In this document: positions 6,701 through 12,700 of the stretch, one piece after another
Layout: every line of letters begins with the position of its first letter
Numbering within the stretch: position 1 is the first letter of the stretch
From: Macrostomum lignano
Lineage: Eukaryota
Assembly (NCBI GenBank): GCA_002269645.1
Contig: NIVC01002986.1
Coordinates: 63,036 to 127,035 of the forward strand
DNA length: 64,000 bases
Direction: 5' to 3'
Translations under genes and position numbers: made by a program
Notes under the pieces: model-generated
The model's database searches: none
What the model saw: only the letters and a program-made list of their open reading frames with translations
Told to the model about the DNA's origin: nothing

Positions 6701-9700
6701 ATGAGAGCCGTTCCACACTGTCAGAGGATAACACACTCCCAGTGCTAATGAGAGTCGTTCCACACTGTCAGAGGATAACACACTCCCATTGCTAGTGAGA
6801 GCCGTTCCACACTGTCAGAGGATAACACACTCCCAGTGCTAATGAGAGCCGTTCCACACTGTCAGAGGATAACACACTCCCAGTGCTAATGAGAGCCGTT
6901 CCACACTGTCAGAGGATAACACACTCCCACTGCTAGTGAGAGCCGTTCCACACTGTCAGAGGACAACACACTCCCAGTGCTAATGAGAGCCGTTCCACAC
7001 TGTCAGAGGACAACACACTCACAGTGAAAGACGTCCCTAAGCGCTCAATATCTCTTTTACTGGTTCCTTCTTCCCTAAATTCTGAGCTACAGAAGTTTTG
7101 GGCTTAAGAAGTTTAAAAGTCTTCGACGATGTAAACTTTATGTTTGTAAAAGCGACCCGTTACTGCAAGCGAGGGATGAAAATAAAAGGGCAGATGCAAG
7201 CAAAGATCAGTGCAGAAGTGGCTTGCCCTCCCATTAGCTTTAGTTCCTAGCCGGGGTCAAGCGTGTTTGCTAATGAGAAAGTGAGCTCGAGAATGGCTTC
7301 AGCGAAAACACACATTGAAAATATCTTGGCAGGCTTTTGCACCGCTTCTGCTTTCACTGGATGTAGGCGGAGTAAAAGCAAATAATGGGAAATGAAAAAG
7401 TCAATCGATAAAATACGGACTTTTTATTTCTAAGAAAGACCAATTAGACTTCTGCAAACGATTGTGCATAGTTCGAACTATAGTTCGATTCGTTAAACCT
7501 AACTCTTAACAAGGTATAATCCAGGGCGTCACTTTGTCCAGAGAGATCGGGTGAGACAGTTTGAACCTGTTCAATGTTCATTCATCCCCAAATCAGCAGG
7601 TCCAGTAAAGAGAGCGACGACGCTTCCAGTTCTATCCGGTCTGGATTTCTGCCTGACGACGAGGATGAGAGCTCATGCGCCACGCTCGAGGAAATATCTA
7701 ATTGTGTCTGGGTCGATATCCGATCCTGCAATTTTTTTAATATTCCTCTTGGCCAAGCAAACACAGAAGAGTTGATCATAGAGTGGGGCATTTGATCCTT
7801 GAGGACAAGACAGGACGAAATGTAGAGCAAGGTGTGGCTAGCAGAATAAATAATAGTACGTAATTTAGAAAGCAATAATATTAATAAATTCACACATTGT
7901 TGTTTCATAACTTCGCGCACGTACGACGCAACTGTGCTGCTGTATTTTTAGAAATTCTTACGCTACGCTTGCTGTCGTCCTCGCGACTTTGGCAGCTTTC
8001 GATTCTGTCCAACGGATGCCTTCGCTCGGGCATGCTCGCCGCAGATCCCACTAGCGTCTTTGAAGATGTCACTGACGTTGACGCTTCCCTTTTTGTTGCC
8101 TCGTCACCAATGGGAAAGTGAGCCCGAACCAGACTGGCGAATGTTCCGGCGGGAGCGCGGAGCTTGGCCGGTGAGGTTCGCGACGGAATCGAAGAAGGAA
8201 TTGGCGAATCGATGGTTGCTCGATCATTCTCAAGAACAGACGTCAATTGTTTTCTTAGTAGTGGACCGTCGTCCTGTTGTCTTTGCAACTGCGGCGTGTC
8301 AGCTGTATTTTCCTGAGCGTCATCTCTTTCAATTTCGTCCATGCTGCTTCCACGCTTGTTAATATCTTCTTCCCGATAATTGTCCTTCTTTGTTAGTTCA
8401 AAGCCTTCTTGGAATTTTTCTAGAGCACTGGTTTCCGATAGTTGGTCTTTTTCCGAATCATCATTCCGATGTGCGTCGTCAGTGACCGATGCGCAATCCA
8501 ATAGGCTTTCCTTGCGCCTGCCAGTGTTTTCGCCGCTGTTTTCAAACGACTTTTCATTATCGCACAGATTTGAACAAGGAATGGAACTTGATTTATCGGA
8601 TCCCAAGCTTCCATGCCTGTTATTAGCTAGTTCGAATTGATTGAGGCTTTCGGCTTGACTCTGCCGGCCTTTTTCTGGATGATCGATTTGGTCCACTGTT
8701 TGGTCTTGTCTTATTAGAGAAAAGCCATGATAAGCAGGTGTTTGGTTTTGGCTACCCCACGGTTGGTCAGAAATCTCTAGTTGACTATCGGTGGAGTACC
8801 GTGTTTGACCATGCTGGTCAAGTATTTGGTTAGTAGTATCTTCTAATGCGCAATTAGTGCCAGCTGCAGGACTTTCTGAGTGATCTGCATTGATGCGAGC
8901 TGATGAAAGGCTAGAACATTTTGGATCTTCGTCGTCTTGCCTGTCAAGATTATCGTAGGGCGACCCACTCTCCTCTCGTTTCGTAGCAGATTCGGCCAGG
9001 TGCCTCATACTTGCCGACAAAGATTGAAACGGTCCCGCTATTAAATTGTTCCACTCATTTGATATGCCAGTGGAACCAGATGGCAGTGCTGGCCTAGATG
9101 TTGAAGACGACGTTGACGTCGTTGAGCCCGTTGGTGTAGCGGTGAGGCTGTCATCCAGGATGGCGGTCTCGCGAGCGTCGTCCCATTGCGTGTCGAAGAA
9201 TACGCGAACGGTAGGCGGCTGCGGCGGCGGCGTTGGAGTCTGTTGCAGTGCTAGCACAAGAGACGAAGCCTGCGGCGGCTGCGAAGTCGGCATCCCGCAA
9301 TTGCATTCAGCAAACTGGCCGAGCGGATCACCCGGATCAACCAGGCAGGCCTGAGGATCGTGCTTCTGGCACCAGCTCTGAGATCTGAGCTGCGGCAATA
9401 TTGGCGTCCGACACCACAGAGAAGTAGAAGAAGCTTGACATCCGATAGTGCCGGGAAACAGCTCAGCTTCAAGTGAGTCCAAATCTGAACTGGATCCGTC
9501 ATCAATTGGTTCGGTCTTGTTATGCTCCTGCTGGAGCTGGTACTGGTGCTTTTGTTGCTGCTGCGACCCTCCATTAGAGCCGTAAGGCAGTCGTAAGTGC
9601 CGCAGCGTCCAAGACGCTGGCGCTAATCGAGACGGTGACTGACATCGAGCCGCCGCCCTCTGCAGATAAGGATTCTGGCGCTGCGCCTCCTCTAGTTGGA

Positions 9701-12700
9701 GACAGTCGGGGCAGACGCAATTGCAGCAGTATCCGCAATAATTATCATCGTTGACATTGCCGCCGCTGCCGTTGCCGCAGGTGCAGATGCAGTTGCAACA
9801 GCGCTCGTCAGACATGCAAGCTATTTAAACAAGCTGCACCTTCTTTAGTAGATTTTTTATTATTTTGAAAATTATTACAGCTTTTTCGTGAGATTTGGCA
9901 TATCTGTCTCTACCTGATGATAGTTGGAAAGAACCAGTTGCAGAAGCGAGACTATATTTCAGAACAGTCAGAGGGGTGATCAAACAGCGAATGACCCTGT
10001 CAGCTGCTGATTGGTTGGCTCTCGATATTGTATGCTACAGCTTGTAGATAGGGAAGAGGGAAGGAAAAAAGTGGGCACTATAGTGCGCGGATGACAAGGA
10101 TAGGAGGATATCGATGAGAAAATTGCAGTTTTGAGCTATCGAATCGAGTCCAGCGTCCCGTACATTTTCGAGAGCTGTGCCAATGTCAGCAAATTGCAGT
10201 ATTTTTCTCTACTGATAATCTGTGCGTTTTGCTTGATTTCTCTAGCTCATTTTATGGTAAAATGAGAAAATGGAAGTTAGTCGAAGCGCTTTAGGGGAAC
10301 GACAGCTACATCCAGGATGCACTGCTGTCGGCCTCATTTTCGTAAATGTGTGTAGATCATTTTAAAAATAGACGAAAACTTTTTCCCTAGCTAATGGCTG
10401 TTTTATTTACTATCAAACACTGTATAAATTTGAACAAGCCAAGTAGAGCATTTGCTAAGCATCCGTGCTACTAAACGCCCTGTATTGCAGCAGAGACAAT
10501 AAGGTAGAGCGGAAATTTCACAAATTTTCCTACTGACAAGAAATTTGAATATTAGTACACGGATAGACCGAATGGAGACTGAAAGCATCAAACATGGCTA
10601 AGAGTCACAGTGACTTGTCTCGGAAACTTTTTCCGGACTTTTAGCCTCAGCAGCATCAGTTGACAATGAAAGACAGTGCTGCTCCGGGTGAAGAAATTTT
10701 CCGTTCTTATATCGATGCAAAGTTTCATAGTAGCTCGTATGCTTCTAGTAAAAGCTATTATACTTTATGCCAGGAGTTGACATACTCTCTTACCTCAAAG
10801 GGAATAGAGGGGAGAGTGGAGATGACAGGAGAAAGTAGAGATGAAAGGGCAGAGGACAGAGAACAAGAGCTGAGAAGAGACAAAAAATAAGCGACAATCC
10901 ACCTCCTGGACTCTCAGTAGGGGGACCGCGCTGCGGACACCGGCGCCACCGGAACTCCCTGCGTGACACTGCAGCACTAGCTGCCGTGGTCGCCAGGGGC
11001 TAGCGAAATGGGCGGCAACGCCTCCTCGCTGTTTCCGGACGCACGGAGCCCCCTGCAGCTAAGTCAAGTAAGACAAACAATAAACTATCGTTAAGTTTCG
11101 CCAACTAGGAGGCTTCGCTGACCGCTGATGGTTTACACCTATAATTCCAAGTTTCCGAGTGTTTATAAGTCTGATAAGCGCTCGAAAACAAACTCTGGGA
11201 ACTTTTGCGATGGACAGAGGGATGCATTACCGCTTCGCCACTCAGACTTTTCGGCTAGTTCATAGCTAGGTTAGTGCAAAAAATAATTTAAAATCGTGAA
11301 TATCATGATGTTGAAACGATTCTATCAATACTAACCTTATACGACCTAAAAGTCCCAGAAAAAAGACAAAACAGCCAGTCTTTACTCGCAGATTTCACCC
11401 TTCAATCAATGCTAAAATCCTTGTCTAGGCTAATTTTTGTCTATCTAGAAGGCGCTCTGCTCAGATAAGTCTTTCGCCAGACAAGCAGTAGGTGGTGCCA
11501 ATCATCTGCACTACGCTGAACGATGTCTATGAAAAAGAAAAACTAAAAAGTGAGGACGGTTCTAGAAAGTACGTATTGCAGAGAGGTGTTGGAGAGAAAC
11601 GACTCTATTGATGGAAATCCATTAAGCTAGTTGTTGGGCTATAATGTACACGCATGAATAGCTCACATTTGCAGTTATAGATTGAGTATATTGGCAGCCA
11701 GAGCAGGCGGATAGGGAATGAGGGGGGGGGGGTTGGAGGAGGTGGCGAGGCAGAGGGGAGCCTAGAGAAAAATAATTGATAAGAAGGCTTGTTAGACGAA
11801 ACAGGGGGGACTCTGCCAAGTCCGATACGAAGTTGAGAGGGCCGGCGTAGCTGCTGCAACCAGGAGTTCTAAAATTAGCAGATCTCTGGAGTAAAGACTC
11901 AGCCATGTTTTCGTGTTACGGGACTTGTATTTCTATTACAAACTTTCACTCAATTTTTATCCTTATTTTTCATATCGAATTGAAATCGAAATTAATGCGG
12001 CACTTCTAAAATACAAGCATCTTTCTCGTCGCTTGACTTTCTCGTTGCTTGACTTTCTCGTCACTTGACTTTCTCGTCGCTTGACTTTCTCGTCACTTGA
12101 CTTTCTCGTCGCTTGACTTTCTCGTCACTTGACTTTCTCGTCACTTGACTTTCTCGTCGCTTGACTTTCTCGTCACTTGATTTTCTCGTCGTCACTTGAC
12201 TTTCTCGTTGCTTGACTTTCTCATCGTCACTTGACTTTCTCGTTGCTTGACTTTCTCGTTGCTTAACTTTCTCGTCGGCAAGCATGGGCGCAGTCTGTTG
12301 CCTCGGGCTTTTTGGTTCCACGGACATTTTTTTGAATCAACTTCTTATAAAGTAAGCGAATAGGCCTATTAGGTCAGGCTGCGTTAAAAGTGTAGAAAAT
12401 CTCTTTCTTTGTAAGTAAAGGCGCAAGAAACGCGCTTCTAGTGCGTTAGTAGCTCTAGCTCTAGTGCGAAGTCAGCTAGTTTCCATGCCTACTTTTAAAG
12501 CACCACGGCCCGGCCGAGGGACCTATTGCAATACGTAGAAGAAAATAGATGCCTGGGATTGAGCTGAGGTTAACAGCTAGAGATTATTGCCAACCGAACG
12601 TGTTGCATTTCGCAAAAAATACTAGCTGGGTTGTTGGCTTAAGAAAAGCACGCGCGTACCGAACATGCAAGCTCGTACAATCCTTACCGCGTTTAATTGC

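Follow-up and report, generated by a model that had tools for sequence, protein, structure and literature searches.

Nematodes, flies and mammals have UNC-13/Munc13 isoforms that carry the C2A domain and others that lack it, and these govern fast versus slow release as well as release probability. A long, poorly conserved and largely disordered N-terminus takes the place of C2A in mammalian bMunc13-2 and Munc13-3 and in Drosophila Unc13B, ahead of a shared C1-C2B-MUN-C2C core, and bMunc13-2 and ubMunc13-2 are products of one gene with alternative N-termini. The bMunc13-2 N-terminus contains an ELKS-binding coiled coil and its own calmodulin (CaM) site (PMC8066380). The M domain and the N-termini of bMunc13-2 and Munc13-3 show no homology to one another or to anything else, and yet they act alike on release probability via C1 and C2B (PMC8066380). 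The unc-13 gene of C. elegans has a second promoter further downstream, within the intron that precedes exon 14, and this exon alone encodes the N-terminus of UNC-13S, which is 259 amino acids (aa) long; exon 14 follows the C2A exons and a predicted CaM site (aa 556-610), UNC-13L is made from exons 1-31 minus exon 14, and the short mRNA is SL1-spliced (PMC3743133). Since the C2A-less N-termini share no sequence, the question arises whether the two-isoform design is ancestral or was repeatedly invented. Here we describe a stretch of 64,000 nucleotides (nt) from the flatworm Macrostomum lignano (contig NIVC01002986.1, positions 63,036 to 127,035; hereafter the window), in which a long open reading frame (ORF) occupies an intron of unc-13 and may serve as an alternative N-terminal exon. 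A flatworm (Spiralia) exon at exactly the place used in nematodes would be a further piece of evidence that this gene layout is of common descent.

An earlier note on this DNA, made from the letters alone, had named the gene as unc-13 with C2A, and a search of protein structures confirmed it. The joined exons 34561-34384 (...AYVVVRLLGAKSTTTTVRGLAPTWEQDFI) and 26545-26401 (...GLEVELWCRGAFWDRMIGCAWIPLD...), on the minus strand like the rest of the gene, matched the C2A domain of Munc13-1 (PDB 2CJT, E=2.2e-13; 2CJS, E=1.3e-12), and each exon was placed by this match together with its translation. When pieces of the gene were searched against protein sequences, two UniProt fragments from Macrostomum lignano came up, and a cluster look-up returned a third, A0A1I8IIP2 (P0003, 887 aa). 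Given the Munc13-1 C2A match and the M. lignano UniProt fragments identical to exons of the window, the window is, judged by its sequence, the M. lignano unc-13 locus and encodes a C2A-bearing orthologue. By translation, the exon chain on the minus strand reads 15233-15174, 14581-13976, 13920-13039, 12874-12688, 5777-5731 and 5576-5486. The eight acceptors of the verified chain are CAG in seven cases and TAG in one, and its donors are all GTAAG, GTGAG or GTAAC. The C2A isoform has two long, disordered linker exons, 14581-13976 and 13920-13039 (606 and 882 nt), separated by an intron of 55 nt (gtaagtagg...ctttctttag, 13921-13975, minus strand) that was placed by translation; very short introns of this kind and multi-kb introns stand side by side in M. 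lignano unc-13. Within the second linker exon, a 24-nt unit (SPPQVSRQ) is repeated in tandem about 14 times in frame (13369-13713, minus strand), and the UniProt models pass over this array from QSPPQ to SSLLNRH.

The exon that precedes the intronic ORF (12874-12688, minus strand) ends in SRLRWQGAVDKICSQLNA, a segment resembling a calmodulin helix, and in the phase-0 donor AACGCG/gtaagg (a slash marks the splice site). This segment bears a resemblance to the Munc13-1 calmodulin site; a PDB sequence search with it gave no match. Beyond the intron, the first shared exon (5777-5731, minus strand; ATVDSDGGTDEMRKR-) extends from ccgcag/GCGACA to CAG/gtaagt and leads from phase 0 to phase 2. The second (5576-5486, minus strand), placed by translation, encodes (R)VGPTRSFFDNIEMVPEVKNRRRAVPMVSDL and -RVGPTRSFFDNIEMVPEVKNRRRAVPMVSDL, and appears similar to the conserved RKRKPIPLVSDL stretch that precedes C1 in Munc13-1. 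Inspection by eye of 1-5486 in its three minus-strand frames revealed no C1-like sequence.

The intron that hosts the ORF measures 6.9 kb and runs from the calmodulin-helix exon (end 12688) to the first shared exon (start 5777). The ORF has the same strand as the gene, and the placement given in the earlier note, within the intron between 12688 and 5777, stands. This intron follows the exon with the calmodulin-like helix, and the position is also that of C. elegans exon 14 (PMC3743133). The reading frame spans 9815-7905 of the minus strand, with an ATG at 9815, 636 sense codons and a TGA at 7905-7907; the coding part of the proposed exon takes up 9815-7962, that is 618 codons or 1854 nt from the ATG to the last exon base (MSDERCCNCIC...REDDSKRS). 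The open frame reaches 639 codons, against a longest frame of 238 codons for the 4-kb region and of 310 codons for the ORF sequence in 300 dinucleotide-preserving shuffles, and the remaining five frames across the ORF hold 17-42 stops each. The codon usage of the other coding pieces of the window (1254 codons) served to train a log-likelihood score. It gave +0.14 bit/codon in frame 0 of the ORF; the other frames scored -0.11 to -0.35, and same-strand intron controls -0.24 to -0.37. The score is partly circular because stop codons lower the values of the other frames. In frame 0 the score was above zero in all four sub-segments, namely the first 52 codons, 9659-8969, 8968-8675 and 8674-7962. 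The GC content is 0.49-0.56 in three of the four segments and 0.46 in 8968-8675, and that of the flanking intron is 0.40-0.46. The segment 8968-8675 (minus strand) is the one that a UniProt model excises as an intron (GTGGGT...CCAG, 294 nt, in frame); it is open over its 98 codons with a positive frame-0 score, and would be either coding, with the UniProt model in error, or an optional 'exitron'.

The 618-aa product is rich in S, D, Q, L, A, T, P and E and acidic, with a net charge of -34. Its N-terminus is Cys-rich, with 11 Cys in residues 6-38 (CCNCICTC...CGYCCNCVCPDC). Neither a coiled coil nor a clear basic amphipathic helix was found in the ORF product, in which the best amphipathic stretch covers residues ~253-280. 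Repeats, whether tandem or dispersed, are absent from the ORF, and the window holds it only once. An origin as a transposon or retrogene was considered and rejected, since the ORF is not flanked by direct or inverted repeats, a poly(A) tract is absent and there is no further copy in the window.

The ORF also carries a splice donor that suits the gene. CGTAGC/gtaagaat (7961-7954, minus strand; GT at 7961-7960) follows codon 618 in phase 0, lies 18 codons ahead of the stop and matches the phase of exon 5777. The dominant cis-donor motif of M. lignano is GT[AG]AG (PMC8629364), and a scan of 12900-5400 showed that this donor is the sole GT[AG]AG within the whole ORF, where ~3.7 would be expected at random in 1.9 kb (P ~0.12, a rough estimate and weak alone). 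On sequence grounds the ORF looks real, and it is most likely a genuine, lineage-specific coding exon of M. lignano unc-13. A sceptical view would be that the frame is non-functional or very young, either a decaying former exon or gene or an ORF arisen de novo, with no protein under selection. The lack of any domain or homologue found, and the low-complexity parts of the ORF (a TGC/GGC run, Q runs and S/T runs), would agree with this. However, an unbroken frame of that length is far beyond the shuffles, the codon bias is frame-specific in every segment, the deficit of GT[AG]AG motifs points the same way if only slightly, and the linker exons of this gene, which are certainly coding, are no less orphan. 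We regard a non-functional frame as very improbable.

The same donor bears on another proposal, namely that the ORF is a gene in its own right, made of a single exon and nested within the intron of unc-13 on the strand of that gene. Such a gene would leave donor 7961 unused and encode 636 aa from ATG 9815 to TGA 7905, reading into an 18-codon tail followed by the TGA (VRISKNTAAQLRRTCAKL; 7961-7905, minus strand) that is used only without splicing at this donor. Its mRNA would be cut from a longer precursor or arise from a promoter of its own, and be polyadenylated past ATTAAA 7741 or AATAAA 7428, the nearest poly(A) signals, which lie 164 and 477 nt past the stop. The ORF is indeed complete from ATG to stop, its protein is unlike any unc-13 sequence, and many precursor transcripts of M. 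lignano code for at least two proteins (PMC5730564). It would nevertheless be odd for a nested gene to hold one strong donor in 1.9 kb, placed 18 codons before its stop and in phase with the next unc-13 exon, which we roughly estimate to occur in ~1% of random placements. Moreover, a sense-strand intronic poly(A) site would cut unc-13 transcripts short, and an exact-product look-up did not find the 636-aa product on record as a called gene. A nested gene is, in our judgement, distinctly unlikely.

Explicit translation showed that the junctions 12688>5777, 7962>5777 and 12688>9659 all stay open through exon 5576-5486, and 12688>9803 is in frame as well; 12688>9820 is out of frame and meets a stop after 42 codons. 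The skip product, 12688>5777, leaves ~45 residues from the CaM-like helix to RRRAVPMVSDL, a spacing similar to that in Munc13-1 and one that favors the proposed alternative N-terminus. The short product, which runs from ATG 9815 over the junction 7962>5777, is in frame and lacks C2A, the linker and the calmodulin-like helix; its isoform-specific exon sits on the same strand between the long-form N-terminal exon 12874-12688 and the shared exon 5777-5731. Most of what had been read from the letters at first sight held on closer analysis. The long, non-repetitive intronic ORF of 618 codons with its own ATG was reproduced by the ORF read-out and the repeat search, the donor described as strong and in-frame (SKRS/gtaaga) proved to be the only one of its kind in the ORF, translation through 5486 agreed with a C2A-isoform splice from 12688 to 5777 that is phase 0 on both sides, and the in-frame acceptor at 9659 was found in phase 0 with an open junction from 12688.

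Concerning the 5' end, the candidate start codon (9815-9813, minus strand; context cttgcATGt) is codon four of the open frame, which is preceded by an in-frame TAA (9825-9827), and an acceptor (ttgtttaaatag/CTTGCATG, that is aaatag/CTTGC; 9822-9816, minus strand, exon start 9820) lies 5 nt ahead of it. At the 5' edge of the ORF the GC content jumps from 0.34 (9800-9899) to 0.55-0.63 within the ORF, which places the 5' edge of the exon near 9820 rather than at 9659. The coding-like character of codons 1-52 and the position of the ATG at the start of the open frame also favor an edge near 9820 and the use of the genomic ATG. Indeed, an ATG as fourth codon would be unexpected if this stretch were merely intron ahead of a cassette acceptor.

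Such a cassette, internal to the C2A isoform ('LMR'-type), would be spliced from 12688 to 9659 or 9803 and then from 7962 to 5777, have no separate 5' end and lengthen the protein by ~566-614 residues after the calmodulin helix, ahead of the shared region; it is compatible with the use of the same exon as an alternative N-terminus. Both entry junctions are in frame, and the gene already has large internal exons, the linker exons given above. The best-consensus internal acceptor, ccttatctgcag/AGG (9670-9659, minus strand; exon start 9659, phase 0), is the first at the 5' end of the ORF to fit the YTNCAG/CAG consensus (PMC8629364), and its use would give a 566-aa cassette or an N-terminus started by a spliced-leader AUG. 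The UniProt entry A0A1I8IIP2 contains an internal exon of this kind, as it joins ...SQLNA to RCCNCICTCG... with 100% identity to the window. Its exon start, gacgag/CGC (9805-9803, minus strand; phase 0), is however a GAG acceptor, unlike the eight other acceptors of the gene. Because this acceptor is atypical and is, moreover, the first AG in phase 0 within the open frame, as an ab initio predictor that maximises ORF length would pick, the junction at 9803 is probably such a choice. An edge at 9659, for its part, would leave the open frame, the codon score of 9660-9815 and the GC step at ~9820 unexplained and would make it a coincidence that the open frame has an ATG so close to its start, and an insert of ~600 aa between the CaM site and C1 would be an unusual architecture. 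We consider an internal cassette possible but unlikely.

Start codons may also be supplied in trans in this species. A 35-nt spliced leader (CGGTCTCTTACTGCGAAGACTCAATTTATTGCATG) that ends in ATG is trans-spliced onto ~30% of M. lignano genes, and the preferred trans-acceptor motif is YTNCAG (PMC8629364). The first match to this motif at the 5' end of the ORF is at 9659 (CTGCAG) and the second at 9530, and a leader joined at 9659 or 9803 would supply an in-frame AUG. The sequence TTGCATG at 9819-9813 is identical to the last 7 nt of the leader, and the match extends no further. As this 7-mer occurs 9 times in the window against ~8 expected, and as no longer match is present, the identity is put down to chance, and a retrocopy of a trans-spliced mRNA was rejected.

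Further upstream in the intron, 11060-10794 (minus strand) is a candidate non-coding leader exon or promoter of the short form. A GC-rich patch at 10900-11060 (70% GC at 10900-10999) is followed by a CT-rich stretch with a strong acceptor (ttgtctcttctcag/C, ~10869) and by a consensus donor, tttgag/gtaagaga, at 10793. That this region is a leader exon or promoter for the intronic exon is speculative; its donor could pair with the acceptor at 9820 and would then favor a 5' edge of the exon there. The piece 10869-10794 was also tried as a coding cassette and rejected, since in phase 0 it runs into a TGA and is therefore non-coding at most.

Taking these features into account, we infer that the intronic exon might be an alternative N-terminal exon of unc-13 and the positional counterpart of C. 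elegans exon 14, a reading to which we give about an even chance. Transcription would start within the 6.9-kb intron, just upstream of 9820 or at a leader exon at ~10.8-11.0 kb that is spliced to 9820, and translation would start from ATG 9815. The exon would then splice from 7962 to 5777, in phase, into the shared part of unc-13, giving a protein in which an acidic, probably disordered N-terminus of 618 aa replaces C2A, the linker and the calmodulin helix, and transcripts from the upstream promoter would skip the exon (12688>5777) and yield the C2A isoform. Judging from UNC-13MR and bMunc13-2, such an N-terminus would alter the targeting of the priming factor and the C1/C2B autoinhibition that sets release probability.

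Several observations weigh against an alternative N-terminus. The acceptor 5 nt upstream of the ATG, which the earlier note had proposed as the start of the exon, is present, but it is a TAG with a weak pyrimidine tract and is out of frame with 12688 and with the spliced-leader AUG alike. A leader joined there would indeed place its AUG out of frame and 5 nt before ATG 9815 (PMC8629364). Near the 5' end of the ORF, the in-frame site at 9659 is the best acceptor. The ATG itself has a T at -3, and the first 38 codons are TGC/GGC-rich low-complexity DNA that readily stays open. The only public model with the exon, A0A1I8IIP2, makes it internal (12688>9803). Finally, unc-13 continues past the low end of the window, and the C1-C2B-MUN part to which the exon would be joined lies outside it.

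In its layout, the flatworm exon resembles C. elegans exon 14 in several respects. Both are single, large exons in the intron between the exon with the calmodulin site and the first shared exon; the flatworm exon appears to be skippable in frame for the C2A form, as exon 14 is, and lacks C2A, a CaM site and any recognisable domain or homologue. Like C. elegans, M. lignano uses spliced-leader trans-splicing, although the flatworm leader ends in AUG and thereby offers start-codon options that nematodes do not have. In contrast to exon 14, the flatworm exon encodes 618 aa instead of 259, is acidic (net charge -34), starts with a Cys-rich segment and has no detectable similarity to the nematode sequence. 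Moreover, the intronic promoter and the SL1-spliced mRNA of C. elegans have been demonstrated, and their flatworm counterparts are putative. In its proposed form, the flatworm protein would also resemble bMunc13-2, Munc13-3 and Unc13B in having a long N-terminus instead of C2A. Unlike that of bMunc13-2, its N-terminus yielded neither a coiled coil nor a clear basic amphipathic helix, and no sequence similarity was detected.

A more far-reaching combination would be that the exon is a true first exon whose Cys string serves as a membrane anchor through palmitoylation or metal binding, and that its exon 14 position goes back to an ancestral two-promoter gene of protostomes or bilaterians. We consider both together improbable. 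If the former were true, a flatworm unc-13 isoform would be tethered to the membrane by lipid and not through C2A-RIM; if the latter were true, the N-terminus of the short form would have diverged beyond recognition. M. lignano is capable of transgenesis and amenable to RNAi, so the isoforms are testable there. RNA-seq data, spliced-leader peaks, RAMPAGE and T-fill poly(A) tracks are public for M. lignano (PMC5730564), and so are the genomes of M. cliftonense and M. hystrix (PMC10468722).

The N-terminus had been called novel, which is overstated, since most of the exon is already in UniProt under a wrong name. A0A1I8IIP2, an 887-aa fragment from M. lignano that bears the name 'Rhoa gtpase effector dia/diaphanous', agrees with the window at 100% identity along exon 12874-12688 and along 9803-8970, and at 99.5% identity along 14583-13975 and 8675-8055, with one junction-codon mismatch in each. 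In terms of its residues, 403-680 (278 aa) are 100% identical, and the mismatch in 681-887 (207 aa) is the junction codon alone. This model treats 8968-8675 (294 nt) and the SPPQVSRQ repeat as intronic, lacks both ends of the protein and is not recognised as unc-13. In all, three M. lignano UniProt entries derive from pieces of the locus (including 12498-12563 and 24334-26508, minus strand) and bear names that have nothing to do with it. A0A1I8HVE5 takes its name from a myosin motor domain and stops at a TAA within the intron (12497-12495), and A0A1I8JP42 is named for Arm-DNA-bind_2 and consists of a C2A exon and translated minisatellite. The alternative exon 12563-12498 of A0A1I8HVE5 was treated as a prediction artefact; it leads straight into the TAA and gives a truncated product. 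The unc-13 locus is thus misannotated in UniProt, and its exon model needs to be rebuilt.

The 618 aa had no match in Pfam, in PDB, in a word-indexed search of 5.8 billion sequences or in an exhaustive phmmer search against 1.84 billion cluster representatives, results that say little, also about other entries from M. lignano or Macrostomum, because A0A1I8IIP2 sits behind a 156-aa cluster representative without the exon. The word-indexed search also missed P0002 despite ~90 identical residues, and exact-product look-ups did not find P0001-P0003 on record. The certainly coding linker exons found no more homologues than the intronic exon did. More generally, clustered protein libraries can conceal longer members, and negatives for low-complexity eukaryotic queries need care.

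Repeats are abundant in and around the gene. The introns of unc-13 are dense with minisatellites of 47-nt, 16-nt and 21-nt units (6422-7026, 12021-12277, 14707-15000 and 17600-19230), and the long arrays at 17.6-19.2 kb translate as GRPFI(T/K)LGALSLHWAPFHY. The intron between the two C2A exons contains a very large satellite of short period (29785-32718, minus strand) that translates as (LSIY)n in several frames, with a GC content of 0.25 and a GC skew of 0.94 at 30-32 kb, and copies in the opposite orientation lie at 47377-47908 and 61933-62286 (plus strand).

Elsewhere in the window, tRNA and Rfam scans were empty. On the opposite strand, 44138-45424 (plus strand) is a stop-free frame of 429 codons with a weak match to the serpentine receptor family Srx (PF10328, E=0.002, below the curated cut-off), which may be a G protein-coupled receptor (GPCR) gene upstream of or nested in unc-13. 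At 40426-41032 (minus strand) there are two overlapping frames of 159 codons, one of which (PHPPYSRDLAPADFALFPELKRHLK) resembles the C-terminus of a Tc1/mariner-type transposase and gives a weak rve match (E=0.028); as its frame is broken, this is probably a decayed transposon. Near-identical frames of 126 codons (GGYREEVDEAFINPYFVRFYKFLSRSCNINLMRAT...) occur at 48600-48977 and 62963-63340, 14.4 kb apart, as a dispersed repeat or segmental duplication. Finally, an open frame at 59782-60573 (minus strand) has a strong match to the fibrinogen C-terminal domain (PF00147, E=2e-36) and represents a neighboring fibrinogen-related gene.

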